The notes under the pieces were generated by a model that did not search any database, had not been told where the DNA came from, and saw nothing but the letters and a program-made list of their open reading frames with translations. This document shows positions 1,135 to 36,754 of a DNA stretch of 64,000 nucleotides, piece after piece (the first letter of the stretch is position 1; every line of letters starts with the position of its first letter). The position numbers were made by a program, and so were the translations under genes. The DNA comes from Phaeosaccion multiseriatum (Eukaryota > Protista > Ochrophyta, other classes), in assembly GCA_965112735.1 (NCBI GenBank), contig OZ218963.1, forward strand, positions 1,550,001 through 1,614,000. The letters run 5' to 3'.

Positions 1135-1239
1135 AAAAAAATACGCTTTATTCACAAGCGACAGCCAGGATTCGAACTCGCAATAGTCTTGTTAGAAGTC
1201 GTACTTTTGCTAGACTGATACCTCCCGACTATTCTAACA
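1135..1239. mobile_element. Degenerate copy of palindromic-repeat element family P1 (part of internal region plus internally deleted repeat at 1190-1239)
   Basis: TGTTAGAAGTCGTACTTTTGCTAGACTGATACCT at 1190, ending TTCTAACA at 1239. Upstream ~55 bp resembles the internal segment at 38570-38620. Confidence 0.8.
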
Positions 1240-1471
1240 GGCGGCCTAAGACTTAGGCGGGGGCCGGAGGCCCGCGGCCTAGGGCAGGAGACGCCAACTA
1301 GGCGCAGGTCCAGGGCGGGAATATGCTCATATGCCCCTGGGCTGGCCCGGAACCCGCCCGTGTCTTCCCTTTCCTTTTTTTTTTTTAACACTCGATTTCG
1401 TAAGGATCGCCCAAATCGCCCGATTTCCCCCCCAATTTTTTTTGGCACATACTCGACCCCTGACACGCTAT

Positions 1472-2238: not shown

Positions 2239-2773
2239 TGTTACGATATAAGGCATCCCAATATGCCTTCAGTATTATCCAAACGTTTGGATAATACTGA
2301 AGGCATATTGGGATGCCTTATATCGTAACAAAAGGTGGGTTCCTTGAGCCCTACACCTTCGCACCGGGGGGTTGGCGCTACCGACACGTTCGTCCCTAAA
2401 TACTGTCCCTTTGTTTATCCCACCAGTTTTCACGTGCTTTTTTCAACAGGGTACGACCCTCTGGTATCTCCTTGGGAACCCCCCTCGGGAAACATCATAT
2501 TATTTTTTCCTCTTTCCTCAGGTAGGACTCGAACCCCTCTTTTGTTACGATATAAGGCATCCCAATATGCCTTCAGTATTATCCAAACGGCGTTTGGATA
2601 ATACTGAAGGCATATTGGGATGCCTTATATCGTAACAAAAGGTGGGTTCCTTGAGCCCTACACCTTCGCACCGGGGGGTTGGCGCTACCGACACGTTCGT
2701 CCCTAAATACTGTCCCTTTGTTTATACGTTTGGATAATACTGAAGGCATATTGGGATGCCATATATCGTAACA
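2239..2773. mobile_element. Palindromic-repeat element family P2, tandem array P-X-P-partial X-half P
   Basis: Perfect 92-bp palindrome at 2239-2330, internal segment 2331-2542, second palindrome 2543-2637, repeat of the internal start 2638-2724, half palindrome to 2773. No TSD visible. Confidence 0.85.
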
Positions 2774-3720: not shown

Positions 3721-5828
3721 TTGGCCCTGTATTGGCCTTTCTATGGCTTAGAAGCTGCGAATGAACTGCAGAATACACACTCACAGGGCCCACCATACAT
3801 CTTGCTGGCGGACTGGGTCTCTGGAATGAGCTCGCCATTGCGATTGCGCTTCCAGGTCCGCTTGTCGGTATGCAGCAAGTCTTCTCCTTCCCTGTGTGCA
3901 CGCTCACGCCACCCCTCCCAACCTCCTGCTAATGCCCACACTTCTCGCACATCTTACAGGCCCTATCAACCGCCGCAACAACCACCAGAACCTCCTCAAT
4001 GCACTCAGAGGCAACCTCGGGCCGCTCAGCACTGGCGACAACACCAAGGGACATTCGACATGGGCCCAACCCAGCAGCAGACACAAGAGACGACGATGCT
4101 TCAGCAGCCCAGTGAGCGAAGAGGGTCTTGTCAGGATACGTTTGGATAATACTGATGGCACATCAGACGCCATATATCCTGACAAAAGGTGAGCTCTGGG
4201 AGTCCTACCTTCACATCGAGGGGGTGGATGCTACCAACACGTTCGCTCCTAAATACTGTCCCCATGCCCATACCATTTTTCTAGTTGTTTCACACTTAGG
4301 GTACCACCCTAATCTGGTATCTTTCACGGGCTCCCCCTCCCGGGAATATCTTTTGCCTCTATGGCGCTGGTAGGACTCGAACCCACATTTTGTCAGGATA
4401 TATGGCGTCTGATGTGCCATCAGTATTATCCAAACGTTTAGGTCTCCCCTTCACGGACACCGCAGCGACAGTGGCAGCTCATCATCCAGCAGAGCCGTCC
4501 GTGACAGTCACGCTTGTAGAGGACGGCAGTCGAGGGATGAGCAGCACTCTCTGCCTCAGCTTCAGCATACAGAGAGCTCTCAATCGCGACAGCAAGAAAG
4601 GAAGGAGCAAGAACAGAAGCGTCGTAGACTGCTGGAAATGGTGCTGCAGCTGAGGGAAGACGCTGTGAAGCGCCTTGACTCCATGAAGAGGATACTGCAA
4701 ACACCAGTCAACCACCAGCAACTCTCTCCCCACCGGCAGTCCTCTCCTCCTTCTCAGCGTATGGAGCGGACTCCTTCACCACCACGAGGACGTACTCAGC
4801 AGCGCTCGTCTACAATGTCGCGGCAGCAGCATCAGCAACCTCAGCGCTCGTCTACAACGTCGCGGCAGCAGCAGCATCAGCAGCAGCAGAGACTGGAGAG
4901 TGGGGGGAAGCTCGAGGTACTGGAGGAGGAGAAACAGCGGCTGCAGGTGGAGAAGGAGACACAGCGGCTGCAGGTGGAGAAGGAGAAACGGCGGCTGCAG
5001 GAGGAGGAGGAGAAGGTGAGACAGCAGCAACAGCGCTCACAGCGCCAACAACAAAAGCTGACCAGTGGCGGGCCACAGCAGCACCCGCAGCCCTGTCAGG
5101 AGCAGCTGCTGCAGCGGGAACAACAGTACCATCGGCAAGAGCGAGCACCGCAACAGCAGAGATTGGAGCAAGACCAGAAACGTGAGGGACAGCTCGAGGT
5201 GCAGGAGAAGCGGGAGCAGCTGCTATTGGAGCAAGAGATAGTGAAGGAAGAGCAGCTGCAGCTGGGGGGAAAGCTGGAGAAGGCGGAGAGAGTGAAGGAA
5301 GAGCAGTTGCAACTGGGGGGAAAGGAGGAGAAGACACTTGATCAGCAGCAACTGCATGAGGATGAGACGCAGAAGAAGCAGAGGCAGCTGCTGGTGAAGG
5401 AGGAGCCTCTGCAACTGCAAGAAGAAGGGAAGGATGAGGAGCTAAAGTTGCGATTGGGGAAGGAGGAGTCAACACTGCAGTTGTCTCCACAGGTGGTGCT
5501 GCAGAAGCGCGAGATTGAGCTGCAGGCCTCTCTACAGCAGGATGTGGAGGAAGAGGAGGGCAAGGGAAGCTCCGCTGAGTGGGAGGAGCTTCATTTGTCT
5601 TTGGGCCTGCCGATGGTGGACGCGAACGGGCCTCAGCGCTTAGGTCAGCTGTACCCTGGGCGGATGGCACCAGTTGGCATTGGTACCGGGAGGTTATCAC
5701 CCTTCAGTCATTGGCAGCTTAGTACTGACAGCTTTTGCGGCAGTACTTGTGGATCTTGGATGGGCATGCAAGGGCGCGGAAGATCATGGAGAGAGATGGC
5801 AGCAAAGAGCGGTATGGGGAATGACTGA
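3721..5828 (+). pseudogene. Long Gln/Glu-rich ORF interrupted by a P2 element; probably an accessory or 3' ORF of an LTR retroelement
   Basis: Removing 4129-4445 joins ORF 3721 (…ERRGS) in frame through PLHGHRSD… to ORF 4638-5828. A PPT and LTR follow at 6593-6905. Confidence 0.6.
4129..4440. mobile_element. Palindromic-repeat element family P2 (subfamily b), P-X-P with arm deletions, TSD GGTCT
   Basis: GGTCT at 4124-4128 and 4441-4445. Arms at 4139-4184 and 4391-4436 are inverted copies. The internal region is homologous to 2331-2542. Confidence 0.85.
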
Positions 5829-9159: not shown

Positions 9160-9570
9160 TGTGGAGGTATGCTCACAAATGGTCGTCAGTTCATAGTTTC
9201 AGTTTCTTCGTTCAGTTTCAGTTTCCTTTTAGTTCTTTCCAGCCATCTCCTAAAATATTACTCCATCTCTCGTCTTTCTTTTCTCACGAGTGCTCCACCT
9301 CTGGTGGGTAGCGACTGACCTCCTGCTATGTGCAGGTAGGGTCTATTGCTATTGGTAGTCATCCTTTCAGTGCACGACTCCACAATAACTAGTTATTACC
9401 GGATAGTATACATTTCATTTCATCAACGTCAGCGGCGACCAATGTCCGTCTCGCCACTACAACACCCGGTGGTAGGCTGTACACCACCCGCGGTAGGCTC
9501 TTCCAGCATCGAGGTCTACATCCAGCCTTTTTTCGCCGATCCCAGTCAGAGAGCGGCCGCAGTGGATCGA
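9160..9570 (+). mobile_element. 5' LTR (9160-9384) plus leader and gag start of LTR family B, truncated
   Basis: TGTGGAG...CTCCACA termini. Near-identical to the reverse complement of 33150-33554, diverging abruptly at ~9570. Confidence 0.9.
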
Positions 9571-11109: not shown

Positions 11110-11408
11110 TGTTGTGATAAGTATCGCCATTTGTGACTGAGCACTATATCGACGTACAATATCGATGTGGATATCGATATTCATGTATGGCCACGGCCAT
11201 CACTTCCTTGAACGCATCTCTCAGTAGGTATTATTAATACACGAGTTGACACTACTCTAGCTTGTCCCTGTCATCGTAGAGGAGATATCGCAATACGACA
11301 GCTGTCGCGACACTTCACAGCTAGCTGGTTCTACGTAGTCGGCGACGGCACACAGGCGAGTTTTGGTCGGATAACTCAAGTGAGAGAGAAGGAGTCCTTT
11401 CGTTAGCC

Positions 11409-12239
11409 ATGCCAGGCGCGGAAGAAGAAGGCGTTGAAAAGGCGGACGCAGCGGCGCCCGTCAGTGCGAGTTCCGCGATAGAAGGAGACGCACAGCAGCA
11501 GATGGCTGAAATGATGGAAAAGATGATAGCGGCAGCGTTGGCCAAACACATCACACAGCAAGGAGTGCCCACGGCAGCGGCCGCAGCACCAGTCACTATC
11601 TCCTCAGTCGGAGGAACAGTGACCCCCAGCGGGGGGGGGAGTACAGCACAGCAGCTGCTAGAACTCACGTTCAAGCCGAAGAACAATGAGTTTGACAAGA
11701 AGTTGGAATCGGAGGGAGTGATGCCTCTCTTGCGATTTATGCGAGCGGTCACGGATCACATAGGGGGGATGGGGGCAAAGGCATTCTTGGTGGATAGTGA
11801 TAAGATCCCCAACGCAGACGACGCCTTCCGGGACTCTAAGTATGCCCTGACGTTCAGTCTGTACCAACAGACGGGCCTCAAGATTTTGGAGGCCATTCCC
11901 TCGGACATGAGGGATGCCATAGAAGAACGCACTCGCACAGCGCGGTTCCAAGTGGACCTGGTACTATTGATGCAGGCAATCAAGGAGGCAGTGATGGGGA
12001 GCACGCAGTCACAGCGACAAGAGTTTCTCACCTCCGAGATGCACGATCTGAGGCCAGGGGTGGGGGAGACGGGACTTGCCTACCTCAACAAGTTTCTCCA
12101 ACTCAACGTGTTGATGACGGAGGAGCAGCTTCCTATGTCCTACTCCATCATCAAGGACAAGTTCCTCAGGCGTATGGGGCAGAGATGGGAGTCGTTCGGC
12201 CAAGTGCACGGTCATTCGGTAGAGACAGGACGAGTTTAA
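11409..12239 (+). CDS. gag: Copia-2 gag N-terminal part (frameshift near 12222-12239)
   Basis: First ORF after the 5' LTR. The +1 frame is open from ~12223 and leads into the Zn knuckles. Confidence 0.8.
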   Translation: MPGAEEEGVEKADAAAPVSASSAIEGDAQQQMAEMMEKMIAAALAKHITQQGVPTAAAAAPVTISSVGGTVTPSGGGSTAQQLLELTFKPKNNEFDKKLESEGVMPLLRFMRAVTDHIGGMGAKAFLVDSDKIPNADDAFRDSKYALTFSLYQQTGLKILEAIPSDMRDAIEERTRTARFQVDLVLLMQAIKEAVMGSTQSQRQEFLTSEMHDLRPGVGETGLAYLNKFLQLNVLMTEEQLPMSYSIIKDKFLRRMGQRWESFGQVHGHSVETGRV

Positions 12240-12255
12240 TCGGTTCAAACAGCAA

Positions 12256-14547
12256 GTGCAGCGGTTTGACAGTGACCTCCAAGCGCAAGCGAGGGAGGCG
12301 GGAGAGGACCTTGAGCGGGGCCTTTTCCACATTTACCAGCAAAGGCAGAAGACACAGCAACCAGCAGGGGGGGGTAGACAGACCACCACAGGGGCAGGAG
12401 AGAAAGATCGGTCCAACACACGCTGTTACAGGTGTGGGAGAAAGGGGCACATGCGGACGACGTGTCCGTCCAAGGAGGAGCTGTGTTTCAACTGCCACAA
12501 GCCGGGGCACCAGCGTGCAGACTGCCCAAACAGCAGGAAGAAGAAAGATGGCGAGCATGTGGAAGGCTCCACCAGCGCCATTTTCAGCATTCCGTGGACG
12601 CTACAGGAGAGGGGGAGCGGCCATTCTCTCTACCATATGTCCAAGCTGAAGTCGGGGGCGGATGGCACACGGCAGGGGCTCGCAGACAGCGGATCGGCGC
12701 TCAATGTGTGGCCCAACTTGGATGGACTGTACGATTTCTGCGCTCATCAGAGTTTAGTGCAACTCGCAGACGGCAAGTCGCACGCGCAGATAATGGGCAA
12801 AGGGAAGGTGAACATCAGCTACGTCTCCAACGACGGCAAAAGAGGACTGAAGGGGCTGGAGGTAGTGGTGTCGCCAGACGTACCTTTCTGCATTTTTGCA
12901 GAGAAGAACCTCTCAGACCTACTGGGGGGGAGCGCAAGGCCAGCGGGGAAGCCAGTCTATTTCGGCCCCTCAGCAGACGCACCAGAGACGGTGCACACGA
13001 CGCAGGACCCAGAGCTGGGGCTTGACATGCTACAATTCAAGATCGAGGAGACCACGGAGCAGTGGAGTGATTACATGACTTACCACTGCAAGAAGGGCCA
13101 CCGCAACGATCAAGAACTACGGCGACAGGCCAAGCTGGAGGGCGTGACACTGTGCGGGAAGAGGGCGCCGTGCAAGACTTGCGCAGAGGTGAAGATGACG
13201 AAGGCAGCTCAGAGTAAGCAGTTCATCGACTACCCCAAGGCACCGCTGGCACAGGTAACGCTCGACACCATTCCTCTCGAAGGAGAGCACGTGTTGCAGG
13301 CGTGCTGCCCGCACACGGGTATGGGCTGGTGCAGGAAGGTGGGGGGAAAGACGGAGGCGCACTTCCAGAGCGTGTATGACGACCTCAACACCACAGTATT
13401 CATTCCAGGGGAGAGGACAGCGGGGTACAAGGTGCAGTGTCTGTCAGCAGACAACGGATCGGAGCTCATCAAGACGAAGGCAGCGAAGAAGATGCTCTAC
13501 TCCCAGGGCATTGAGGTCAAGCTGACGGACCCCAATTGTCAAGCGCAGAACGGACTGAACGAGGCTCGACACAAGGAGCTGGCGCGAATGTCTATTCTTT
13601 TCATTGAGGAGGCGAAGCTGGAGGAGCACTCGAAGCAGCTGAGGTTCGTAGCGTACAAGTTGGCGCAGCTTCTCTACAACACCAGGTGCAGGAGGGGGCA
13701 GCAGCAGTCCCCCTACGAGCTGTATTTCAAGCGCAAGCCTGACCTACAGCACCTACACATCTTCGGAGAGCAGGCGAAGGTGCGGGTGGGCAACAAGAAG
13801 CACAAGCAGTGGCACAACGACAAGACGCACTCGGCAGTGTACGTGGGACAGAGCCCCAACCACAGATCAGCCTGTCTCCTTTTCTACATCCCTTCACAGA
13901 AGCGGTTCATCTCCAGCTCGTCCTACACATTCGTGACGAACCGCAGACACGACGGCACGGTGTTCGGGAGTCACGTGGAGAAGGGGAAGCTACCAGAGAC
14001 AGCGGAGAAGGAGGATGACAGCGAGGACGAGGACCAGCCCTCGAGCAGCGGGAGCAGCAGCAGGAGCAGCAGCAGGAGCAGCAGCAGGAGCAGCAGCAGT
14101 AGCGCGAGCGGGGGAGGTGGGGGCGGGACCAAGAGTGGAACCGTCACATGGAACACGAGATTAGAGGAGGCACAGCCAGCCCCACAGCAGCAACAGACAT
14201 CACGCTGGGAACAGGTTCTCACCCGAGAGTTCGTGGAGAAGTTACAACTCGAAGGAGAAGGCCTGGAGCGACGTCAGCACGCCGAGCGGCAACAGAGGGA
14301 GCAGACGGCAAAGCAGCAACAGAGAGAGCAGCAGAAACAGCAAGTAGAGCAGCAAGAGCAGCAGCAGCAGCAGGCAGAGCAGCAACAGGCAGAGCAGCAG
14401 CAGGAAGAGCCAACGCAGCAGGCTGAGCCGCCAGAGAGAGGCAAACTCTGGACATACGAGGTGGCCAAAGATGGCGACAAGGGAGCCAAGGAGCACGACT
14501 GGGGCCACGATCCCAGCCTGGGCCGCACGCGTAGCGGCAAGCACTGA
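12256..14547 (+). CDS. pol: Copia-2 Zn knuckles, aspartic protease and integrase
   Basis: CYRCGRKGHMRTTC, CFNCHKPGHQRADC, ADSGSA, HCKKGH…CKTC, SADNGSE, QNGLNE. Confidence 0.92.
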   Translation: MQRFDSDLQAQAREAGEDLERGLFHIYQQRQKTQQPAGGGRQTTTGAGEKDRSNTRCYRCGRKGHMRTTCPSKEELCFNCHKPGHQRADCPNSRKKKDGEHVEGSTSAIFSIPWTLQERGSGHSLYHMSKLKSGADGTRQGLADSGSALNVWPNLDGLYDFCAHQSLVQLADGKSHAQIMGKGKVNISYVSNDGKRGLKGLEVVVSPDVPFCIFAEKNLSDLLGGSARPAGKPVYFGPSADAPETVHTTQDPELGLDMLQFKIEETTEQWSDYMTYHCKKGHRNDQELRRQAKLEGVTLCGKRAPCKTCAEVKMTKAAQSKQFIDYPKAPLAQVTLDTIPLEGEHVLQACCPHTGMGWCRKVGGKTEAHFQSVYDDLNTTVFIPGERTAGYKVQCLSADNGSELIKTKAAKKMLYSQGIEVKLTDPNCQAQNGLNEARHKELARMSILFIEEAKLEEHSKQLRFVAYKLAQLLYNTRCRRGQQQSPYELYFKRKPDLQHLHIFGEQAKVRVGNKKHKQWHNDKTHSAVYVGQSPNHRSACLLFYIPSQKRFISSSSYTFVTNRRHDGTVFGSHVEKGKLPETAEKEDDSEDEDQPSSSGSSSRSSSRSSSRSSSSSASGGGGGGTKSGTVTWNTRLEEAQPAPQQQQTSRWEQVLTREFVEKLQLEGEGLERRQHAERQQREQTAKQQQREQQKQQVEQQEQQQQQAEQQQAEQQQEEPTQQAEPPERGKLWTYEVAKDGDKGAKEHDWGHDPSLGRTRSGKH

Positions 14548-14583
14548 CATGCTGTCTCCTCCATACTAGGCCCACTCTTTCTG

Positions 14584-16191
14584 ATGCCAGGCCTAAAGGA
14601 GAGCGAGGTACCGATACCGCGGTCTCTGGCCCAGGCTCAAGCAGGAGAGTACGCGGAGCAATGGACGGAGGCGTACTGGGCAGAGCTCAACGCGATCGAG
14701 CAAAGCCAGGTATGGGAGGAGGTTGATTATCAAGAGGGGATGAATGTGCTGCATACAGTCATGCTATTCAGAGCAAAGGTGACTGGGGGACTTGTGGATA
14801 GGCTCAAGTGTCGATTTGTCGTGATGGGGAACGAGCAGATCGAGGGGGAGGATTACTTTGATACCTTTGCACCAGTGGTGGGGAGCTCGACGATGAAGAT
14901 GTTCTTTGCTATCACGTGCCAGAAGAAGTGGGTATTGGAGTTTGCAGATGTGGAGACGGCTTTCCTGCATGCACCTCTGCATGAGGGGGAGTACGTGTAC
15001 ATTAGAGCACCAGAGGGCATGAGAAAGTTCGGGAAGGTGCTGAGGCTGTTGAAGAGTCTGTACGGTCTTCATCAGTCTCCCAAGAGGTGGAACGAGACAG
15101 TGGTGGCATTTCTACTCGCAATGGGGTGGGTACAGTGCCCAGTGGATCCGTGTCTGTTCGCCAGGTTCGAGGAGGGGGAGCTAATAGGGCTCATCATTCT
15201 ATATGTAGACGACCTAGGAGGGTCAGGGGAGGGAAATCTCATTGACTGCACTTTCAAGGAGATTGACGAGCGTTTCAAGTTGAAGCGTTTGGGGTCGAAT
15301 GTGGGGAAATTTCTGGGAGTTGAAGTTGACTACGCATTCGAGGCGGGACAGCTCAGGCTTTCGCTAGGAGGGTATCTTAGAGCGATGCTTGAGAAGTTCG
15401 ACATGACGGAGGTACCTGTGTACGGCTCACCAGCAGAGCAGGGGGTACATTTGTCAGTGGGTATGGAGCCAAGCACCACAGAGGAGGAGGAATTCATGCA
15501 GGACAAACCATACTGCTCAGCGGTAGGGTCAATCCTATGGGTTGCCAACTGGGTGAGGCTTGATGTATCCTTCGCCATCATGCAGTGTGCTCGTTTTATG
15601 AAGAGGCCGGGGCCTCGACACTGGGCAGCATTGCAGCGCATTTTCGGGTACTTTAGAGGTAGTTTAGACTTGGGAATTGAGTTTGATCGAGAGGCGGGGC
15701 TTCATCTGGAGGCATACGCAGACTCGAGCTGGGCAGATGACGTCGACAGGCGCAGGAGCTCAGGGGGATACGTCGTGACATTCGGCGGGGGAGTGATTGC
15801 TCACAAGGCAACACTATTTAAGGTCATAGCACAGTGCTCTATGGAGAGTGAGTACATGGCCGCAGCGGAAGCAGTGAAGGAGTTGCTGTTTCACAGAGGG
15901 ATTCTGGAGTTTCTGTTTCCAGGAGCCAACATGACGGAGTCGATTGTGCACGAGGACAATCAAGGGTGCATTCAGATGGCAAATGGCAACGCGGGCACCA
16001 AGCGCGTACGTCACATCGACATTCGTTATCATTTCCTGCAGTACCACGTGGACAAGGGACACGTTCGGTTTCAGTACATCAGCACAAAGGACCAGCTTGG
16101 GGACATCATGACCAAGGCATTGGCACCTCAGGTACACAGCGGTCTGGCGGGGCAGATGCTCAAGAAGGGAGACAGGAAAGGGGGGGACTAG
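14584..16191 (+). CDS. pol: Copia-2 reverse transcriptase plus RNase H
   Basis: DVETAFLHA, LKSLYGLHQSP, LYVDDL, YADSSWA, EDNQGC, RHIDIRYH, DIMTKAL. Same frame as 12256-14547 after one TGA. Confidence 0.96.
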   Translation: MPGLKESEVPIPRSLAQAQAGEYAEQWTEAYWAELNAIEQSQVWEEVDYQEGMNVLHTVMLFRAKVTGGLVDRLKCRFVVMGNEQIEGEDYFDTFAPVVGSSTMKMFFAITCQKKWVLEFADVETAFLHAPLHEGEYVYIRAPEGMRKFGKVLRLLKSLYGLHQSPKRWNETVVAFLLAMGWVQCPVDPCLFARFEEGELIGLIILYVDDLGGSGEGNLIDCTFKEIDERFKLKRLGSNVGKFLGVEVDYAFEAGQLRLSLGGYLRAMLEKFDMTEVPVYGSPAEQGVHLSVGMEPSTTEEEEFMQDKPYCSAVGSILWVANWVRLDVSFAIMQCARFMKRPGPRHWAALQRIFGYFRGSLDLGIEFDREAGLHLEAYADSSWADDVDRRRSSGGYVVTFGGGVIAHKATLFKVIAQCSMESEYMAAAEAVKELLFHRGILEFLFPGANMTESIVHEDNQGCIQMANGNAGTKRVRHIDIRYHFLQYHVDKGHVRFQYISTKDQLGDIMTKALAPQVHSGLAGQMLKKGDRKGGD

Positions 16192-16519
16192 TTTTAGTTC
16201 AGTAGTTTTAGTATGAGGTTTTCAGGACTTTGTCTCGGGGGGGTTTTAGGACAAGTCAGGTGTTTCCTCATTGTGTTTGTGGTAGAGTGTCAGCTATCAA
16301 GAGAGATAGTGATTCAGTCATAGGAGGGTGTTGTGATAAGTATCGCCATTTGTGACTGAGCACTATATCGACGTACAATATCGATGTGGATATCGATATT
16401 CATGTATGGCCACGGCCATCACTTCCTTGAACGCATCTCTCAGTAGGTATTATTAATACACGAGTTGACACTACTCTAGCTTGTCCCTGTCATCGTAGAG
16501 GAGATATCGCAATACGCTC

Positions 16520-17872: not shown

Positions 17873-19543
17873 GTGAGGGGCGCTCGGTCGGCCACAGCGG
17901 CACCCATGGCGGATTCTCCCACCAGTGTGGTCCCGAGTGGTGTTCGGACTCGCGCCCAGCGCGCTGCCGCTGAGGAAACACGTGCTGCAGGCGAGGCAAC
18001 AGCGACGGTCACGCCCCCATCTACCCCTCGTACGTCAGGATTTCTCCAGCGTCTCTCTGGTGGTTTCACTGGGTTCCTCTCTCGGCAGTCGGCGGCCCTC
18101 TCGGCGGCTGACGAGGCGGAGGTGGACGCTCAGGCTGAGCGGGATGTGGACCGGGTTATACAGGCTGCTGCTGCCCTCGAGGCTGATGCCGCGGCTGGAG
18201 CGGTGGAGGAGGAGGAGGAGGAGAATTCGGAGGAGGAGGAGGAGGAGGAGGCGGAGGAGGAGGAAGGGACGGCTTCGGCGGCAGCGGGGATGGCAGGGGG
18301 TACTGTGGGCGCTGTGGCAGACGGCAGGGCTGCGACTGCTGCAGCCCCGACGGTAGCGGAGGCAGCGGGCGGCATCGCTGTCGGTGACGGGTTGGGGGTG
18401 CAGCAGCGGTTGCTAGCGGCTCAGATGTTGGGGCTGCAGCAGCAGATGGCCAGTTTGCATCTCCAAGCCTTGCCGACCGGTGGCCCTGTGCTGGGGGGGG
18501 GGGTGCAGACGATTCGGAGCTTGCCCGCTAAACTCTCTCTCATGCCCACGCTCACCTGGGGCATGACGCACCGGGCCACGTTGGAGGTCGTCTCCGAGTG
18601 GATGCAGCAGCTGGAGTCCTGGGGCTACATGCGGCACGGGGAGGTGAAGGAAGAGCAGTGGGTGGAGGTGCAGCGTCTCATGACTGAGGGTTTCTCGGTG
18701 ATGGAGCGGAGTAAGCTCGATACAGCGGTGAGTGTGGAGATGTCTGCACCTGACACTCCGCCTTTCTACCACGCGGCCGTGAGGGCGCTATTCCGGTTCT
18801 TTCACACGGTCGAGCTGCAGAGCGCCGCGGTGGTACGGAGCCTGGTGACGTCCGAGTTGACGGGCTGCATGGAGTCCAATCTCAAGCTGGTGACGGGGGT
18901 GTATCAGGTTAACGGCCTCAGGGCCTTGTTGGCGCAGGTCGGCGGCGATGCTCTGGCCGCCATCGTGGATCAGGAGGGGATGGCGGTTCTGGAGGCTCAA
19001 GCCATGCATCGGCGCAGGGGCATCAGTCAGCAGTCGCTCACCAACGCCATCCTGCAGGAGGTGAACATGGCGATGGCACACAAGCACTCCTGGGCGGCCT
19101 TGGGGACTATGTTGGAGCGGAAGTGCCCCCAGGAGTTCGAGCAGGTGCTCATGGATCACAGCCAGTTGTCGTGCGGGGGTGGCGGTCGTGGCGGTGGTGG
19201 TGGGGGCGGTGGGGGTGGCAGGCCTAGGAGGGAGAGCATGGACATCAACGCCGTGGATCTGCCGGCTTCTGCTGCCGCTACCACCTCCATGGCGGCATCG
19301 GGTGCCACCCCGCAGACTGTGGGGGCCGTGGTGCCGGCTCTGCACGCGCCGGCGGATCGCTGCTATGGGTGTGGTCAGACAGGGCACTTCCGTTTTGGGT
19401 GTAATGTGGTGCCCCCAACCCCGGGCCTGAAGCGCGCGTTGATGAAGCAATTGAAGCGGAAGCTGGCGGAGGACCCGGATTTCGACGCCATCTCCGAGAT
19501 GGTTCGGGGCGTGCAGGCAGAGGCAGCGGGTGGTCTGTTGTGA
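17873..19543 (+). CDS. gag: Gypsy gag
   Basis: 556-aa ORF with an MDINAV motif and CCHC knuckle CYGCGQTGHFRFGC, upstream of pol. Confidence 0.85.
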   Translation: MRGARSATAAPMADSPTSVVPSGVRTRAQRAAAEETRAAGEATATVTPPSTPRTSGFLQRLSGGFTGFLSRQSAALSAADEAEVDAQAERDVDRVIQAAAALEADAAAGAVEEEEEENSEEEEEEEAEEEEGTASAAAGMAGGTVGAVADGRAATAAAPTVAEAAGGIAVGDGLGVQQRLLAAQMLGLQQQMASLHLQALPTGGPVLGGGVQTIRSLPAKLSLMPTLTWGMTHRATLEVVSEWMQQLESWGYMRHGEVKEEQWVEVQRLMTEGFSVMERSKLDTAVSVEMSAPDTPPFYHAAVRALFRFFHTVELQSAAVVRSLVTSELTGCMESNLKLVTGVYQVNGLRALLAQVGGDALAAIVDQEGMAVLEAQAMHRRRGISQQSLTNAILQEVNMAMAHKHSWAALGTMLERKCPQEFEQVLMDHSQLSCGGGGRGGGGGGGGGGRPRRESMDINAVDLPASAAATTSMAASGATPQTVGAVVPALHAPADRCYGCGQTGHFRFGCNVVPPTPGLKRALMKQLKRKLAEDPDFDAISEMVRGVQAEAAGGLL

Positions 19544-22500
19544 CGATGCCCCGCCGCTACAGAGTCGGTAGCAGCGGGGCCCGGAGCCCTGGGGCGGGGG
19601 GGGGTGGTAACGGCAAGTAGTAGGGCAGTAGATACGGGAGTTAGAGAGGGTAACAAATCACATAATGTAACACCTCATCGAGCTTGTGTATCGTCTTCCT
19701 TCAGCTTGCTAGCCACACTTCCTCCCTCCCCGAGGGGCGAGATTCACACAGTTGACAGCGGTAGGCCCGTTGACAGCGGTAGGGGGTGGGTTGACGGTGA
19801 TGGGGTGGAGCAGAAGGCGGAGAAGGCGAAGGAGGAGGAGGAGGAGGCGGCGGTGTGGGGTGCGGTAGGGGGCATGCCGTTGTGGCGGCAGCGAGCTTGC
19901 CGTGAGCCACGCCTTCCGAACCATATGCTGCGCATAGGGCGGCGGAAGCAGCAAGCGCTCACTCTGCGCGCAACAGCTGACGCCGCACGGGCTCGGGCGG
20001 CCGCGTTCCTACGTTGTGCAGTGGGGCTCCCAGCCGCTGGGGGTGCAGTCGAGGGTGCGGCCGTTGGAGGGTTGGGGGCTGCCCCGCTCACGTTGGTGGC
20101 GGTGGAGGCGGAGGCAGAGGCGGAGGCGGTGGAGGTGGAGGAGGAGGAGGAGGAGGAGGAGGAGGAGGAGGAGGAGGAGGAGGAGGCGGAGGAGGCGGAG
20201 GAGGCAGCTGACGCAGTAACGGCAGCGGCACAGGAGGGGCCGGCGGAGGAGGAGGAGGAGGAGGAGGAGGAGGAGGAGGAGGAGGAGGAGGAGGAGGAGG
20301 AGGAGGAGGAGGAGGAGGAGGAGGAGGAGGAGGAGGAGGAGGCGGAGGAGGAGGATGAGGAGGAGGAGGCGGCGGAGGAGGCAGCTGACGCCGTAACGGC
20401 GGAGGCACAGGAGGGGCCGGCGGAGGAGGAGGAGGAGGAGGCGGAGGAGGAGGAAGAGGAGGCGGCGGCGGAGGCAGCTGACGCAGTAACGGCGGCGGCC
20501 CAGGAGGGGCCGGCGGAGGCGCAGGCGGAGGAGCAACCGATGTCGGCGGCGCTGGAGGCGGCGGAGGAGGAGGGGGAGGAGGAGGAGAAGGAGGAGGAGG
20601 AGGAGGCGGAGGAGGCGGAGGCGGAGGAGGCAGCTGCCGCAGTGACGGCGGAGGCACCGGAGGGGCAGGAGGAGGCACAGGCGGAGGAGAAACCAATGTC
20701 GGAGGGGCTGGAGGCGGAGGAAGAGGCGAAGGAGGCTAAGGAGGAGCCGACGGAGACGGTGGCGGACAACGGGAACGAGGCTCGACAGACTGGTGCAGCA
20801 GCCGATGCAGCAATAGCAGCAGCGCTCTTTGGGGCTGAGCTGCAGGCAGAGGTTGAGGCCGCTGCACAGGGGCCGGCATGCGGGCTGGTGGGGGCGACGG
20901 CGGAGGCACAGCGGCGGGTCTGGAGGGCCCGACAGGTGGTGGTCATGCGGCGGTGGCGTGAAGGGCATGTGTTCCGCTGCCCTGCGTCTGCGGCTGCTGG
21001 CGTGCCCCGGGGGGTCATGGCTCTGCCGCTCGGGGTCCCTCCATGGGAACAGTCTCTCCGTGACCCCAGCCTGCTTCGGGAGTGGGTGTGGGCGGCGCAG
21101 GAGTGGGTGATCAGCGACGCACAGACAGCTACGCAAGCTGCACAGCGCTGGGCGGCAGAGTGCGCGGCCGCTCACGTGCGGGTGCTGACGTGGGCGGCCG
21201 AAACGTTTGTGATTCCGCCGGCTGGCCGTCGCGTACCTTCGGGGGTGGGGGTTGGGCCTTCAGCCGCGCCGGCAGGGAGTTCTGCTCTGCGGGTCGACGA
21301 CTGCGATGATTTCGACGCGCTGCTCGCGGAGCACGTCACCCTGCTGCCGGAGTGTAGTGGTGCTCTTCCTGCATTGTCTCCGACGGCGAAAGCGTGTCGA
21401 GCAGCTGCGCTCCTGGCACCAGCTGCCGAATCGGTGGAGAGGGAGTGCGTCAGTGGGTGCTCTCTGAGTGCGGAGCGGGAGCCCTGTGAGGTGTGCGTGC
21501 AGCGAGCGAGGGTGGAGATGGCGGCGCTCTCAGTCACTGACGATACAGGGGCAGCGTATCTGCGGCGGGAGGCGAGGCGGAAGCAGATTGAGATGACTCT
21601 GGCGATTAAGCAGACAGGGCGTACCGGGGTGTCGGTCAATCCGCGCGGGCATACGGTATCGGTGGTGCTTCAGTCTGCCCTTCAATTGCGCGAGCAGCTG
21701 CCACGGGCTCCGGTGTCGCTCACGGTGCAGGCCTTGGTGGACACCGGCGCCACTCACACGTGTGCCTCACGTGCGACCTTTGATCGTGGCGTCGCCGCAG
21801 GGGTCTTTCAGGTGCGCGATTTGGCGGAGGAGCGAGTGGCAGTTCGGTACGCCACGACTCAGGCCGCTACGTCAGCCTCGCTCGGTCGGGTGTGGGTGCA
21901 AATCGCCCTCACGCCTACGTGTCAGCCGGTGGTGGCCATGTGGGTAGTGGAGCACCTCGCCCGTCCCTTGATATTAGGCCAAGACGTGCTCACGATGGTG
22001 GGGGCGGTTACTGACCACAAGGTTCATCAGCTGTACGTGCATCCCACGGAGGCGAGTTCTCCGTCGTCGGAGCCGCGGTCGGAGGTTGACGATACCATCG
22101 CCGTGGCCGCTGTCAGCTTGGGGGAGTGTCAGGTGCTGGCGACTGAGGCACTTCGCCTCGCCCCGGGCGGCAAGGCCGTGCTCGTGCTGGAGGCGGACGG
22201 AGGTGTCGCAGGCGGGCGTCTCAGTGTGGAGTTGGGTGCCCACGGGCAGTTGCAGGCGCAGCAGGAGGCGTTGTGGTGGCTGAACCACGAGCAAGTCCTG
22301 GTGAGTCGTGCGGCGTGCGTGGTCGGTGCCACGCAGCAGTGGAGCATCGGTATACACAATCAGCACAATGAGACGATCGTCGTGGTCCCTGGGCAGGCTG
22401 TGGGCGTGGGCACGTATCTGCTGGCGGAGGAGGATCGGCGAGCAGCGGTGGAGGTGGCGTTGTGTGAGCCGGCTCCTCTTGTTGCGCCTTGCACGCCGGC

Positions 22501-25500
22501 CGGGGGCCTTCGTCCGCTCCCGCGTCGCTGGGCACGCTGGGGTGCGTCTCGTGCTGTGGTCGGTGGCGAGGAGCGTGGTGGTGGTGTCGGTGGCGGAAGT
22601 GCAGCAGCAGCCGGAGGAGGAGGAGGAGGAGATGGCGGAGGAGGCGGAGGAGGAGGCGGAGGAGGCGGAGGAGGAGTAGGAGGAGGCTCAGAAGGCGAAG
22701 GAGGAGGAGGAGGAGGAGGAGATGGCGGAGGCGGCGAAGGTGGAGGAGGAGGAGGCAACGACGGAGCGCCCCGACAGGCGTGGCTCGAGGCTGTGGCTTT
22801 GCGTGAGCGCTGGGGACGCGAGACAGTGGCCTCCGATCTGGTCGATGGGCCTGAGGATGTTTTCCGCCCTGTGCCGCTGGGGCCCGTGGCTCTGGGAGCC
22901 GTCCGTGCTCCGGTCGTGCAGGCAGTGCGGCCCGTGACGAGGGAGTCGGGCAAACACAGGCCCTGCAGGCCTGCTCGGCTGGGGCTCGGTCGGCGTCTAC
23001 GGGTGGCGCGGCGGCACGTCTCACTCTCGGTGGAGGGGCCTTTTACTGCTGGTCCTAGCATCTTGGCTCGCCACGCACGGGCTGTAGCGGCCGCAGCAGC
23101 AGCTGGCGGCGGCGGCGGAGGCGCAGCAGTCGCAGGAGGAGGCGCAGGAGGAGGAGGGGGAGGAGGAGGAGGAGGAGACGGAGGAGGAGGAGGAGGAGGA
23201 GGAGGAGGAGGAGGAGGAGGAGGAGGAGGAGGAGGAGGAGGAGGAGGCGGAGGAGCAGCAGGAGGAGGAGCACCTTCCCTGTGCGTGTCTGAGGCCGGTG
23301 TGGCAGCGGTGGACGGGGGGCCCTCAATTGGCGACGCTGGGCCTGGAGGAGGAGGAGGCGATGGAGGAGGAGCCAGCGGAGACGCAGGAGGAGGCGGGGG
23401 AGGAGGAGGAGGAGGAGGAGGAGGAGGAGGGGGAGGAGGAGGAGGCGGAGGAGGAGGAGGAGGAGGAGGAGGAGGAGGAGACGCAGGAGGAGGGGCACCT
23501 TCCCTGTGCGTGTCTGAGGTCGGTGTGGCAGCGGTGGAAGGGGGGTCCTCAATTGGCGACGCTGTGACTGGGGAGGTGGAGGTGGTGCCGACCACGGAGT
23601 CTCCCCAGGCCGCCCTGCATGCATTGCAGGATGACGTGACGGCTGGGCAGCAGGTTGAGGCTACTCAGGGCTGTCTACAGGGCCCGACCTGGACTATCGA
23701 CGAGCATGGTGCCTTGACGTTGGGCGGCACGGGTGAGGGACGGCAGGCGGGCACACGGGAGGCCGCTCACAGCTTGATCGTGCGTGAGTGGGCGCCTCGC
23801 CTCGCAGCGAGTGGGCAGGAGCGGCTCCGTACGTGTTTGGCGGCTGCGGAGGTGGGTGCAGTTACGGCTCTCCTGCTCCTCCGCCCACACGTGCAGCAGA
23901 CGCAAGGGGGCCTGGAGGGTGTCGATGATGTGGTGGTGGCTCAGTGGTTGGAGCAACTCTTGTCCATGTGGAGCAGTCACTCGTTGCTGAAGCAGGCCGG
24001 TGTGGAGACGGAGCTGAACGCAGCACTGCAGTTGTTTCTCACCATTCGGCGGCTCCTGTGGCAGTGTCGTGCCCTGCGGGCGGAGGTGGGAGGGTTGGCA
24101 GGTGGTGAATGTGTGCAGCAGCAGAGGCGGCGGGCGCAAGCAGCAGTGGCACGGGCCAAATTCTACCAGGCGCAGCTGCCCCAGCACATGCACGCAATGA
24201 CTATCGGTGATGAAGGTTGGACAGAAGCGCAGCGGTGGGGCTTGGTGGTGGTGTTGAAGCAGCGAGTAGCGGCCTTCTGCGTGGATGGGAGCGATGACGG
24301 CCGCACAGATTCGGGCCGGTTTGGGTTTCCGTTGCTGGACCCGAAGCAGCCGCCAATTCGGAGTGCGGCACGGCGCTACCCTCCTCCGGTCCGGCGCGGT
24401 ATTGAGATTGAGTTGAACAAGATGTTAGCAGCAGAGATCATCCGGCCCAGCACAGCAGCCTGGGCCACTCCACTCATGGCCGTGTTGAAGACGGACGAGC
24501 ACGGCAACACCAAGTGCCACGAGGACGGCACTCCGATCGTGCGGATGACGTGTGACCTGTCGCAGCTCAATGACGCGTGCCGCACGGAGGCGCCCGCCAT
24601 GCCAGTGGTGGATGATTTGCTGGCGGAAATGCAGGGGTCTACGGTCTTTTCGGTGATGGACATCATGTCTGGCTACTTCAATGTGCCCATGGCCACCACG
24701 GAGGATGAGGACATCTCTACATTTGTCTGCCACAGTGGCACGTACGCCTGGAGAGTCATGCCACAAGGAGCGAAGAATGCACCCGCCACGTTCGTACGCC
24801 TTATGAACACGGTGTTGCAGGGCCTACAGGCATTCGTGGCGTGCTTCGTGGACGACATTGCAGTTTTCTCCGCCACGGTGGATCAGCACATTGGCCAGTT
24901 AGACCAAGTTCTCGGCAGGATGGTGCAGCACAAGCTCAAGCTGGCGCCGAGCAAGGTGGTGTTGGGGGCATCTCAGGTGCTCTTCTGTGGGCATTTGGTG
25001 GATAGTGAGGGGGTGCGGGCCGATCCAGCCAAGTATGCAGCAGTTCGAGCGCTGGCCAAGCCCACTGCGCAGTCAGGCAATCAGGTGCGACAGGTCAGGC
25101 GCTTTGTAGGCATGCTCAGCTACTTCCGCAAATTCATTCCGGCGTTTGCCATGAAGGTGCGGCCGCTCAATGAGCTCTTGCGCAAAGGGGTGGATGTGCG
25201 GTCAGCGTGGGGGCCGAGGCACGACGCGGCGTGGGAGGGGCTCATCGAGGACCTGCTCCGCTCGCCCGCGTTGGCCTTCCCTCACTATGGCTCGGAATCG
25301 GTGTTCACGCTCAGCACCGACGCTTCAGCAGACGGGTTAGGGGGTGTGCTGTCGCAGCGGGATGCCGAGGGGGTGGAGCGAGTCGTGACGTTCATCAGTC
25401 GTGCCACTACCCCCACGGAGGCTCGGCTAGGCAGTACGGAGCTCGAGCTCTTGGCGGTGGTTTGGTGTGTGCGCAAGTTGAGCATGTACATTTGCCACCA

Positions 25501-31499: not shown

Positions 31500-32092
31500 T
31501 TCTGTCTGTCTCCATCGGCCAGCCTGTCTGGCTTTCTGGCTGTGGGTCTCTTCTGTCTGCCTGTCTGTGTCTCTGCCTGTCTCTCTCTCCCTCTGTCTGT
31601 CTGTCCATCTCTCTGTATTGTGTGTCTGTCTGTCCCTCTGTCTGTCTCTCTGTCCCTCTGTCTGTCTGTCCATTTCTCTGTATTGTGTGTCTGTCTGTCT
31701 CTCTGTCTGTCCCTCTGTCTGTCTGTTGTATTGTGTGTCTGTCTGTCCCTCTGTCTGTCTGTCCATTTCTCTGTATTGTGTGTCTGTCTGTCTCTCTGTC
31801 TGTCCCTCTGTCTGTCTGTCCATCTGTCTGTCTCTCTGTCCCTCTGTCTGTCTGTCCATCTCTCTGTATTGTGTGTCTGTCTCTCTGTCTGTCTCTCTGT
31901 CTGTCCCTCTGTCTGTCTGTCCATCTCTCTGTCTGTCTGTCTGTCCATCTCTCTGTATTGTGTGTCTGTCTGTCTCTCTGTCTGTCCCTCTGTCTGTCTG
32001 TCCATCTCTCTGTATTGTGTGTCTGTCTGTCTCTCTGTCTGTCCCTCTGTCTGTCTGTCTGTCTGTCCATCTCTCTGTCTCTCTGTCCCTCT
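31500..32092. repeat. Complex (TCTG)n-based micro/minisatellite
   Basis: Reiterated TCTG, CCATCTCTCTGTATTGTGTG and TGTCCCTC blocks. Confidence 0.95.
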
Positions 32093-33554
32093 TGTGGAGT
32101 CGTGCACTGAAAGGATGACTACCAATAGCAATAGACCCTACCTGCACATAGCAGGAGGTCAGTCGCTATCCACCAGAGGTGGAACACTCGTGAGAAAACG
32201 AAAGGACGAGAGATGAAGTAATATTTTAGGAGATGGAAAGAACTAAAAGGAAACTGAAACTGAACGAAGAAACTGAAACTATGAACTGACGACATTTGTG
32301 AGCATACCTCCACAGTCCCCCCTTTGAAAGCATGTGTGCATACGCAGACATGATAAGGAAAGAGAAAGAGATGAACACAAATAGGAGAGAAGGAAGTAAG
32401 GAAAAGAGGGAATCCACACAGACTGGCTACACCGACTTGGGAACAGAACAGATGGAGGGAAAAGCTGCCTCACACAAGGGGGAGGGAAAAAGCGGCCACA
32501 CAAACAGTCCAGAAACACCAGAGAGTAGAGAGAATTAGCCCTAGCTACACCGACTTGGGAACAGAACAGATGGAGGGAAAAGCTGCCTCACACAAGGGGG
32601 AGGGAAAAAGCGGCCTCACAAACAGTCTAGAAACACCAGAGGGTAGGGAGAATTATTTCAGGGCACATTGGTACTCAGAAGGTATAGGAAAGAGTCCGAG
32701 GGAAACAGAAGAAGATTAGAAGTGAGGAGAGTAACGGTCACGGAGAAAGGTGACAGTACGTTCCGACGCCTGACGCGGAGGGCCGGTGGCGCCGTCTTTG
32801 ATGTGCTGCGTCGCTGCTGCCTTACCAAGGGCCTCTTGGATATTAATGCCGAGCTCCTTCAGGGTGGCGCGGCCCACGGTAACCAACTTGGTCATGTCGT
32901 TATCCGTGATGGCATAGCTGATCTTGGGCACCAAGAGAGGGCCCTGGAAGGTGTGAAGAATGAGGTCCAAAGGTGGAGTACGCCGCTTGTAGGAAAACAT
33001 GTTGGGGCTTGAGGCCGGCAGCGAGGCCTCCGCTGATTGCAGAAGCTGTGCCTTCTACCCATTCGTCCGCACTCTCGTTGTAGACCACGGCGAGCTGCCC
33101 ACATTTATCCAGCGCCGAAAAGAGCTGCACAATCTGCTGCTGGCATCGATCCACTGCGGCCGCTCTCTGACTGGGATCGGCCAAAAAAGGCTGGATGTAG
33201 ACCTCGATGCTGGAAGAGCCTACCGCGGGTGGTGTACAGCCTACCACCGGGTGTTGTAGTGGCGAGACGGACATTGGTCGCCGCTGAAATTGGAAAGTGT
33301 ATGAAATGTACTATCCGGTAATAACTAGTTATTGTGGAGTCGTGCACTGAAAGGATGACTACCAATAGCAATAGACCCTACCTGCACATAGCAGGAGGTC
33401 AGTCGCTATCCACCAGAGGTGGAACACTCGTGAGAAAACGAAAGGACGAGAGATGAAGTAATATTTTAGGAGATGGAAAGAACTAAAAGGAAACTGAAAC
33501 TGAACGAAGAAACTGAAACTATGAACTGACGACATTTGTGAGCATACCTCCACA
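32093..33554 (-). mobile_element. Internally deleted non-autonomous LTR element (family B), identical 222-bp LTRs
   Basis: LTRs 32093-32314 and 33333-33554, PPT AAAGGGGGA before the 3' LTR, gag start (33274) joined to a protease-like tail (VGRATLKELGINI), ~118-bp tandem duplication at 32426-32655. No TSD. Confidence 0.9.
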
Positions 33555-33970
33555 GGGTGCTGGTATCATCGTCGTCGTCGTCGTGGTCGTTGTCATCTTC
33601 ATGGCCTTCACCCTCCCCGCCCGCGGGACGTTTCGCCCCCACATCAACACCACCCCCCGCCACGCTCACAACCTTCGCCGCCAGCTGGCGCTCGTTGTTC
33701 TGTTCCTCGTGTTGCCTCTTCTTCTGGTTCTTCTTGGCTGCTCTAGCATCTCCGCCCTTCAGCGACTGCATGTATTCCAAAGATGTCAGGAACTCCTGTT
33801 TCTCGCTGTCTTCGAGCGAGGAATCTCGGACCAAGGTCATGGCGTCTTCGGTGGCTTCAGCAGACTTCAGCATCGTGTTCATTCTGTTCTGCATGTTCTT
33901 TGCTGAGATTTCCTGAGTGTATCCGAGAGGGATGGAGAGAGGAGGGGATGGGGCGCGGGGTGGGGGGAAA

Positions 33971-36454: not shown

Positions 36455-36754
36455 TGTTAGAAGTCGTACTTTTGCTAGACTGATACCTGCCCTCTGAATT
36501 CAGACCGGGAGGTATCAGTCTAGCAAAAGTACGACTTCTAACAAGGCTAGTTGTGAGTTCGAACCTTAGCTGTCGCTTGTGAAAAAGCGTATTTTTCGGC
36601 GAAAACTGTTACCAGCTTGCTGGCCCATGATGCTGATTCTCAGACTGCGAGTTACTTCTCTCCACTATGTGCGGTGGGGGGGGGGGGTTCGTCTTCTAGC
36701 AACGGTCTTGTTAGAAGTCGTACTTTTGCTAGACTGATACCTGCCCTCTGAATT
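36455..36754. mobile_element. P1 element: full 89-bp palindrome, 165-bp internal segment, half palindrome
   Basis: P 36455-36543, X 36544-36708, half P from 36709 ending at the GAATT symmetry centre. Confidence 0.9.

Follow-up and report, generated by a model that had tools for sequence, protein, structure and literature searches.

We report that two families of tiny hairpin-ended elements, here called P2 and P1, carry a B-box block in one fixed orientation just inside their palindromic repeats. Both lie in a stretch of nuclear DNA of 64,000 nucleotides (nt) from a plastid-bearing eukaryote (C14:1550001-1614000, hereafter the window). P2 is an integrase-inserted, non-coding element resembling the miniature retrotransposons with terminal repeats known as TRIMs, and it is neither a short interspersed element (SINE) nor a tRNA gene. 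In the best single reading of the sequence, to which we assign a probability of about 40%, the block would be a TFIIIC-binding B-box that gives the element its own RNA polymerase III (Pol III) promoter, as in the TRIMs of the TRIMp3 group. The conserved, strand-specific B-box constitutes the first concrete lead to a possible source of the template RNA of these hairpin-ended mini-elements.

A first-pass annotation of the window had flagged the junction at 4362-4425 as a tRNA-like Pol III promoter shared by a palindrome arm and the internal region beside it. This junction belongs to P2b, an old copy of P2, which we used as the query for a search of the genome (67 Mb, 22 contigs) that returned about 21 near-full copies. 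Arms and internal regions were mapped at every locus, giving a canonical unit P-X-P, where P is a perfect 92-bp palindrome composed of two 46-nt arms and X is an internal region of about 210 nt. The copies comprise P2a, a young group (98-100% identical), two copies that are about 87% identical to P2a, the P2c subfamily, about 80% identical to P2b, and P2b itself as a singleton; overall, the subfamilies differ by 20-27%. The outer tips read TGTTACG...CGTAACA and are flanked at at least 12 loci by duplications of the target site (TSDs) that are 5 bp long, including GGCTG, GGAGG, GCCTT, CAGAT, CCTGT, TCTAA, ACCGG, GCTTG, ATGTT, AGGTG and GGTCT. Units also occur as arrays such as P-X-P-X-P-X-P-X-P (for example C12:3039995-3041384) and as composites with X in both orientations. 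The P2 features of the window are as follows.

2239-2773, plus strand: P2a composite, made of P (2239-2330), X (2331-2542), P with a 3-nt insert at its centre (2543-2637), X again, now truncated (2638-2725), and one arm by itself (2728-2773); copies of P2a elsewhere show 98-100% identity
2525-2535, minus strand: B-box GGTTCGAGTCC of P2a; T-stem pairing is lost in the P2a subfamily
4124-4128, unstranded: left TSD of P2b, GGTCT, the same five bases as at 4441-4445
4129-4440, unstranded: P2b, an old singleton copy of 312 bp; inner arms 95% complementary, nearest relatives about 80% identical
4140-4184, plus strand: left inner arm a of P2b, ending in tip-type CCTGACA
4185-4390, minus strand: internal region X of P2b, whose B-box-sense strand is the minus strand; bounded by A4 (4184-4187) and T4 (4388-4391)
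4188-4209, plus strand: degenerate mirror copy of the T-arm-like block (GGTGAGCTCTGGGAGTCCTACC); varies by subfamily, mostly through changes that keep G.U pairs with the right copy
4362-4369, minus strand: acceptor-like CAGCGCC plus A, the supposed CCA end; not kept in the other subfamilies
4373-4383, minus strand: B-box consensus GGTTCGAGTCC of P2b, inside a T-arm-like 17-mer (4370-4386) and the invariant 15-mer (4370-4384)
4391-4435, plus strand: right inner arm a' of P2b, holding a sub-hairpin (4402-4420) that had been called D-arm-like
4441-4445, unstranded: right TSD of P2b, GGTCT, matching 4124-4128

The outer arms of P2b are almost wholly deleted, with the tip bases kept in a left remnant (TGTCAGGATA, 4129-4138) and a right remnant (4436-4440). 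On the minus strand, the flagged junction reads as a hairpin ATGGC/GCCAT (5-bp stem, 9-nt loop), an A-run, GTGGGTTCGAGTCCTAC, which forms a 5-bp stem with loop TTCGAGT, and then CAGCGCC-A. All strings quoted in the first-pass annotation for P2b, P2a and P1 were found where it had placed them, among them, in P2a, GGGGTTCGAGTCCTAC on the minus strand (2522-2537) and, towards the opposite end of that X, its degenerate mirror copy (2334-2357). Their interpretation as parts of a tRNA fared less well. The D-arm-like hairpin is real, but it is a sub-hairpin belonging to the arm itself (in P2a, a 7-bp stem with a 6-nt loop) and not a D-arm. The CCA end consists of the last two acceptor-like bases plus an A and exists only in the P2b singleton, the corresponding bases being GGCA in P2c and GGAA in P2a.

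The B-box itself is conserved. We aligned X from one representative of each of four P2 subfamilies and scored it in 11-column windows (n=205). The 15-nt B-box block GGGTTCGAGTCCTAC, which lies 8 nt inside the repeat and contains an exact match to the B-box consensus, is invariant in all four, against 54% invariant columns for X. Fully invariant windows number 10 of 205 and are confined to two blocks, GGGTTCGAGTCCTAC and GGGACAGTATTTAGG. The expectation that the B-box would be kept better than the rest of X is thus borne out against X overall (p ~0.05), but the block is not unique in this, as it ties with GGGACAGTATTTAGG. Conservation, rather than the count in the window, is the real support for the motif: the window holds two occurrences of GGTTCGANNCC, each of them in P2, against 0.44 expected for the window, and 8 of 100 shuffles reach two. 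Genome-wide, the 14-mer GGTTCGAGTCCTAC has 30 matches, 29 of them in P2 copies or fragments and one in a ketosynthase-like coding exon; a control pattern has 1.

Two further comparisons bear on what kind of signal this is. The terminal inverted repeat extends beyond P into X, giving rise to the mirror block at the other end, and this mirror copy has diverged and acquired a 2-3-nt insertion whereas the B-box copy is unchanged, which points to a function specific to a single end and strand. The T-stem still pairs in P2b and P2c but no longer in P2a and P1, yet the motif is kept throughout, which speaks more for a DNA or protein-binding motif than for an RNA fold. In two P2 copies forming an inverted pair (C10:2320425-2320575, L021/L022), a 27-nt segment with the B-box has undergone tandem duplication, two to three times in each unit. 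The second invariant block (ACGTTCG...CCTAAATACTGTCCC; 2383-2412 and 4236-4265) resembles the palindrome centre plus the start of the arm (CCAAACGTTTGGATAATACTG), a likeness that suggests a degenerate internal repeat unit within X, with ATACTG as a possible recurring site.

P1 carries the motif in a corresponding position. As the first-pass annotation proposed, a B-box-type motif lies in the X of both families; it sits 8-16 nt inside the hairpin repeat and in one shared orientation. Across the P1 family, GAGTTCGAAYC starts 4-6 nt inside the hairpin (the GTTCGA core at 6-8 nt) at about 80 sites in three subfamilies, and it points inward at every site. The X regions of P1 and P2 were compared by eye only, and no alignment between them was achieved in this way. 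The tips of P1 read TGTTAG...CTAACA, with an apparent 4-bp TSD at 38367-38991. The P1 features of the window are as follows.

1168-1241, minus strand: old P1 remnant; 1168-1179 reads, as its reverse complement, B-box-like GAGTTCGAATCC, and the hairpin has lost its centre but not its tip
36455-36753, plus strand: P1 element; a 91-bp palindrome (36455-36545) is followed by X (36546-36709) and then by one arm (36710-36753)
36555-36565, plus strand: B-box-like GAGTTCGAACC, as quoted in the first-pass annotation; its start lies 10 nt and its GTTCGA core 12 nt inside the hairpin, and the likewise quoted T5 run (TTTTT) is at 36592-36596
38367-38991, unstranded: P1 composite forming a perfect 625-bp palindrome with an AT-rich centre; 309-nt arms, 100% complementary, with B-boxes at 38599-38609 (minus) and 38749-38759 (plus)

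The AT-rich centre of the P1 composite is itself palindromic, and the centre of the P1 hairpin occurs in two inverted ("flip/flop") versions (36455-36545 and 38901-38992). The two families also meet physically: a P2 is nested in the poly-G part of a P1 X at C14:2618711-2619019 (L028), and the four-unit P2 array at C12:3039995-3041384 (L014) sits at the centre of a P1-type palindrome.

Both families are TRIM-like and integrase-inserted because they combine TG..CA tips with fixed short TSDs. The SINE-like character ascribed to them in the first-pass annotation is contradicted by how they move, as TG..CA tips with TSDs fixed at 5 bp (about 4 bp in P1) are the signature of the integrase of a long terminal repeat (LTR) retrotransposon. 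P2 has the short terminal direct repeats, TG..CA tips and absence of coding capacity of a TRIM, and its 5-bp TSDs fall within the 4-6 bp of TRIMs. The integrase for P2 is likely supplied by a resident element, Copia-2, whose tips (TGTTGTGATA... and ...ATATCGCAATA) are similar to those of P2.

11110-16514, plus strand: resident Copia-2; each LTR (11110-11295 and 16329-16514) is 186 bp long, and the TSD, CGCTC, is 5 bp

A 12-bp palindrome directly after the 5' LTR of Copia-2 (CGACAGCTGTCG, 11296-11307) shares the 9-mer AGCTGTCGC with the X of P1 (36566-36574), where it lies about 24 nt inside the hairpin; this sharing may be due to chance.

No primer-binding site (PBS) was found in P2, the sequence adjacent to the repeat being tRNA-sense, not complementary, and without a TGG start. 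No polypurine tract (PPT) was found in P2 either, the tract before the other repeat being pyrimidine-rich or mixed on either strand. We considered and rejected a standard PBS at the B-box block, which is tRNA-sense when read away from the repeat, its other strand being in PPT position with no complementarity to an added CCA. Also rejected was a simple miniature inverted-repeat transposable element (MITE), arm-X-arm in layout and ending at CGTTTGG, since the TSDs lie beside the outer tips of complete palindromes. At C4:1782192-1786649, a 4.4-kb composite lies between P2c arms with a matching 5-bp TSD (CCGGG); its interior, covered outside the middle part by loci L006 and L003, has open reading frames (ORFs) of 277-320 amino acids, and a poly-T tract abuts a palindrome centre. 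It was discarded as a candidate autonomous element, these ORFs being without a Pfam match.

Several clues point to the strand and the ends of the template. Runs of four or more T occur once on the B-box-sense strand in all P2 subfamilies (T4, at the far X/P junction) and two to four times on the opposite strand. Three truncated units retain the end of X distal to the B-box, joined to the inner end of an arm, the pattern that copying from the 3' end of a B-box-sense template should leave. The centres of P2 palindromes carry copy-specific inserts of 0 to about 40 nt, GC-rich or AT-rich and partly palindromic round a small loop, and these inserts differ even between the two repeats of a single young element of 99-100% identity. 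Insert types include CGCG-type, G/C runs, A4T10 and AT-rich stems round a 6-7-nt loop; examples are found at 2284/2285 (no insert) and 2589-2591 (GGC) in the window, and at C12:3040026 (L014), C14:2310010 (L013) and C10:2320607 (L021). Judged by their sequence, the centres look like de novo junctions made by run-off, non-templated addition and fold-back or template jumping, which would place an end of the replication intermediate at the palindrome centre. This is also approximately the start site predicted by tRNA-type promoter geometry (B-box at +52 to +62), so that the start inferred from the B-box coincides with the de novo junctions.

Under the Pol III promoter reading, transcription would start some 55-60 nt upstream of the B-box, near the palindrome centre. 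The P2 transcript would then cross X in the B-box sense and end with the T4 of the X/repeat junction at the far side, about 250 nt in all, with an A-box that may be weak or dispensable. This transcript, or a copy made from it, would be the template, and the product would be inserted by the integrase of a resident Copia (P2) or Gypsy (P1) element. The RNA intermediate put forward in the first-pass annotation is among its points that find support, as a plausible one. If the promoter is confirmed, a plastid-bearing alga would join plants, fungi and animals as a host of TRIMs with Pol III promoters, in a form that lacks PBS and PPT; should it be refuted, the motif would still be the mark of a cis element on which two otherwise unalignable families depend.

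A number of observations weigh against a Pol III promoter. The conservation statistics of the B-box are modest at the p value given above, and the second block GGGACAGTATTTAGG is equally invariant with no Pol III meaning. The palindrome arm had been proposed to supply an A-box; this claim is not supported, the candidate being the least conserved part of the arm (AGGCATATTGG in P2a, TGGCACATCAG in P2b). Beside a perfect and invariant B-box, the best A-box candidates have 1-2 mismatches to TRGYNNANNGG, differ between P2a and P2b at 4 of 11 positions, and lie in a sub-hairpin maintained by a compensatory A-T to T-A change. In Cassandra, Helenus and Ajax the B-box is part of the terminal repeat, which it is not in P2 and P1. 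The single terminator candidate of P2 is a minimal T4, and in P1 a conserved T5-T8 run lies about 30 nt past the B-box, so that a Pol III RNA of P1 would end after about 100 nt and could not be a full-length template. At the ends of X, which can pair with each other, G.U-type changes exceed A.C-type changes 5:1 on the B-box-sense strand; this bias speaks for the promoter reading, but it is statistically modest and only suggestive (p ~0.1). Finally, ARAGORN reported no tRNA in the window or at five related loci (L034, L037, L038, L054, L055). An Rfam scan at gathering score gave no match, including to RF00005, and at E<=10 the segment 2200-4480 yielded no tRNA match, just generic matches of miRNA precursors to the perfect palindromes.

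The closest known kind of element is TRIMp3, the TRIMs with a Pol III promoter, which comprises Cassandra (5S), Helenus (tRNA-like) and Ajax (5S) (Kojima 2024, PMC10886601; for Cassandra see also PMC7215508 and bioRxiv 10.1101/2023.07.14.548913). Among these, Pol III transcription has been experimentally validated for Cassandra only, and elements of this group are thought to arise by insertion of a SINE into a TRIM (PMC10886601). P2 and P1 share with TRIMp3 a tiny non-coding body with terminal repeats, TG..CA tips, 4-5-bp TSDs and tandem arrays, presumed mobilization by resident Copia or Gypsy elements, a conserved motif of a small-RNA-gene promoter (GGTTC in box B) and an overall length (0.3-0.4 kb) that Pol III can span. 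Membership fails, however, on box position and on PBS and PPT. TRIMp3 elements have A and B boxes inside the LTR, recognizably tRNA- or 5S-like, whereas the one clear box of P2 and P1 is the B-box, positioned outside the repeat by 8 nt in P2 and 4-6 nt in P1. Nothing recognizable as tRNA- or 5S-like was found inside the P2 and P1 repeats. TRIMp3 elements also possess the PBS and PPT that P2 and P1 lack, and the terminal repeats of P2 and P1 differ from theirs in being perfect 91-92-bp palindromes with copy-specific centres.

P2 is also reminiscent of ordinary TRIMs and small LTR retrotransposons (SMARTs) in its size, in its direct repeats at the termini, in tips and TSDs of integrase type, in arrays with shared repeats and in the likeness of its tips to those of an autonomous partner. 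It differs from them in having neither a tRNA-complementary PBS nor a polypurine tract and in the palindromic nature of its repeats, and the two repeats of one young P2 element are unlike at their centres, a difference that would not arise in standard LTR replication. A literature search for TRIMs with palindromic LTRs found none. Retrozymes, which Cervera et al. reportedly described in 2016 as non-autonomous LTR elements with hammerhead ribozymes, offer another parallel: they too are small non-coding LTR-type parasites in which a structured-RNA device replaces the ordinary Pol II LTR. Rfam found no ribozyme family in P2 or P1, however, and retrozymes keep their PBS and PPT.

A fuller version of the Pol III promoter reading is improbable, but would have wider consequences. 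In the predicted transcripts of P2a and P2b (centre to T4), the 3' UUUU pairs with the A4 beside the 5' arm, a self-priming configuration. Transcription driven by the B-box would run from the centre of the hairpin repeat to T4, and pairing of the 3' oligo-U with A4 would prime reverse transcription of the 5' arm. Run-off at the 5' end of the RNA, non-templated addition and a template jump or fold-back would then remake each palindromic repeat, and a borrowed Copia or Gypsy integrase would insert the product. If true, this would constitute a new mode of replication for integrase-dependent retroelements, with no tRNA primer, PPT or R region, and would account for both the perfectly concerted arms and the copy-specific palindrome centres.

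The alternative that survives best, although we consider it unlikely, is that the block is a cis-acting replication signal and not a promoter. The block would here form one strand of the extended terminal inverted repeat through which the ends of X pair, and the likeness to a B-box would be incidental or inherited. Pairing could set the 3' end of the template beside the arm, for self-priming in the manner of Tf1 or by snap-back, or the block could be a site for packaging or for recognition by reverse transcriptase. The ends of X do pair over about 25 bp, at -29 to -33 kcal/mol against -15 +/- 3.6 kcal/mol in shuffles. The resulting duplex is about 6-10 kcal/mol stronger on the B-box-sense strand, where 177 of 182 cells pair; the opposite strand reaches 165. 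The placement of the transcript's UUUU on the A4 adjoining the 5' arm suits this explanation, ACAAAA and CACCTTTTGT are invariant, and because P2 has neither PBS nor PPT, some unusual form of priming is needed. Yet one partner of the helix is invariant and the other drifts and carries a 2-3-nt bulge, and in P1 the ends of X pair weakly (z ~-2) with no A4/T4 junctions. The whole P2a transcript does not fold clearly better than shuffles (z -1.5); the predicted short P1 transcript folds no better than its own (z -0.3). Pairing also leaves the match of two families to the B-box consensus unexplained.

A neutral origin, in which the block is the relic of a tRNA or SINE fragment captured by an ancestral element and appears conserved because the copies are young, strikes us as decidedly improbable. 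In P2b and P2c a full T-arm does lead into a GC-rich 7-mer and then an A, much as in the 3' half of a tRNA gene, the P2a copies are nearly identical to one another, and the proposed origin of TRIMp3 offers a precedent. However, the 15-mer has remained unchanged between subfamilies as divergent as those of P2, the adjoining acceptor-like bases and the mirror copy do change, the core motif of P1 is kept across three subfamilies, and a search for a parent found no tRNA gene in the genome carrying the 14-mer GGTTCGAGTCCTAC.

We give little credence to a non-autonomous DNA transposon of foldback or MITE type, in which the motif would be a subterminal transposase site within a terminal inverted repeat of about 115 bp. 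Ginger-like elements are an example; Bao, Kapitonov and Jurka reportedly set out in 2010 the family properties of these integrase-related DDE transposases. Long inverted repeats at the ends, running through the palindrome into X, fit such an element, as do the lack of PBS and PPT and the TGT..ACA tips with short, 5-bp TSDs, which are compatible with integrase-related DDE transposases. On the other hand, the tips resemble those of the resident Copia-2 LTRs, whose TSD has the same length. A transposase site would be expected to be kept at both ends and only one copy is invariant. De novo centre inserts, P-X-P-X-P arrays and truncated units attached to the inner ends of arms all look like products of copying, not of cut-and-paste. 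The ORFs of the C4:1782192-1786649 composite provide no transposase by Pfam match; the genome was not searched for one of Ginger type.

For the tRNA-related readings, the evidence is more decisive. Neither ARAGORN nor Rfam/Infernal detected the tRNA-like fold that the first-pass annotation had seen at the junction, and a tRNA gene or pseudogene is ruled out by their negative results, which hold for Rfam even at E<=10. The 7-mer expected to complete an acceptor stem on the 5' side, CGTTTGG, forms 2 Watson-Crick and 2 wobble positions with CAGCGCC. In the genome, a T-arm-plus-acceptor pattern matched P2 copies and one ketosynthase-like exon and nothing else, and a pattern of an A-box plus GGTTCGAGTCC had zero matches. 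A looser A-box/B-box pattern recovered organellar tRNAs, organellar-type sets of which lie on the small contigs of the genome, and a few nuclear tRNAs, none related to P2. P2 and P1 resemble tRNA-derived SINEs in that the B-box is internal, the body is non-coding and about 250 nt long, and an oligo-U/A-tract might allow self-priming. They differ in lacking a tRNA head detectable by covariance model and a conserved A-box, and insertion by a long interspersed element (LINE), which leaves variable TSDs and tails, is at odds with the fixed TSDs, TG..CA tips and hairpin terminal repeats of P2. A tRNA (pseudo)gene, or a tRNA-derived SINE of the classical type that depends on a LINE to move, for which the B-box, a hairpin near A-box distance (36-37 nt start to start) and the GCCA of P2b could be cited, is thus already refuted by the structure of the copies, with their integrase-type ends, palindromic terminal repeats and lack of an A-rich or LINE-derived tail, and by the negative ARAGORN and Infernal results. 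Sites of these hairpin elements that match the B-box should accordingly be annotated as neither tRNA genes nor SINEs.

We also searched for relatives of P2 in metagenomes by means of a 20-nt palindrome centre. None of the 58 matched loci had further similarity to P2, and the 12 matches whose context was read are DnaA-box-like sites, apparently bacterial. Within the genome, matches to the A-box/B-box pattern drew attention to three further loci as candidate hairpin families, which were rejected. Two of them (L062, 1400-1990; L080, 1440-2140) are large near-perfect inverted duplications of coding-like DNA, and the third (L076, 1500-1930) is an inverted pair of bona fide tRNA-Gly(GCC) genes with a T7 terminator after each. 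The genome seems to be prone to palindrome formation.

Other repeats of the window include a 1.46-kb element at 32092-33555 with identical 224-bp LTRs (TGTGGAG...CTCCACA), a third, inverted copy of which lies at 9279-9570; this is probably another small non-autonomous LTR element. A G/C-skewed satellite of about 2.4 kb with a 41-nt period and long GGA/GGC triplet arrays occupy 49100-51500 and 18100-23000, the triplet arrays being likely low-complexity coding sequence in a Gypsy-rich region.

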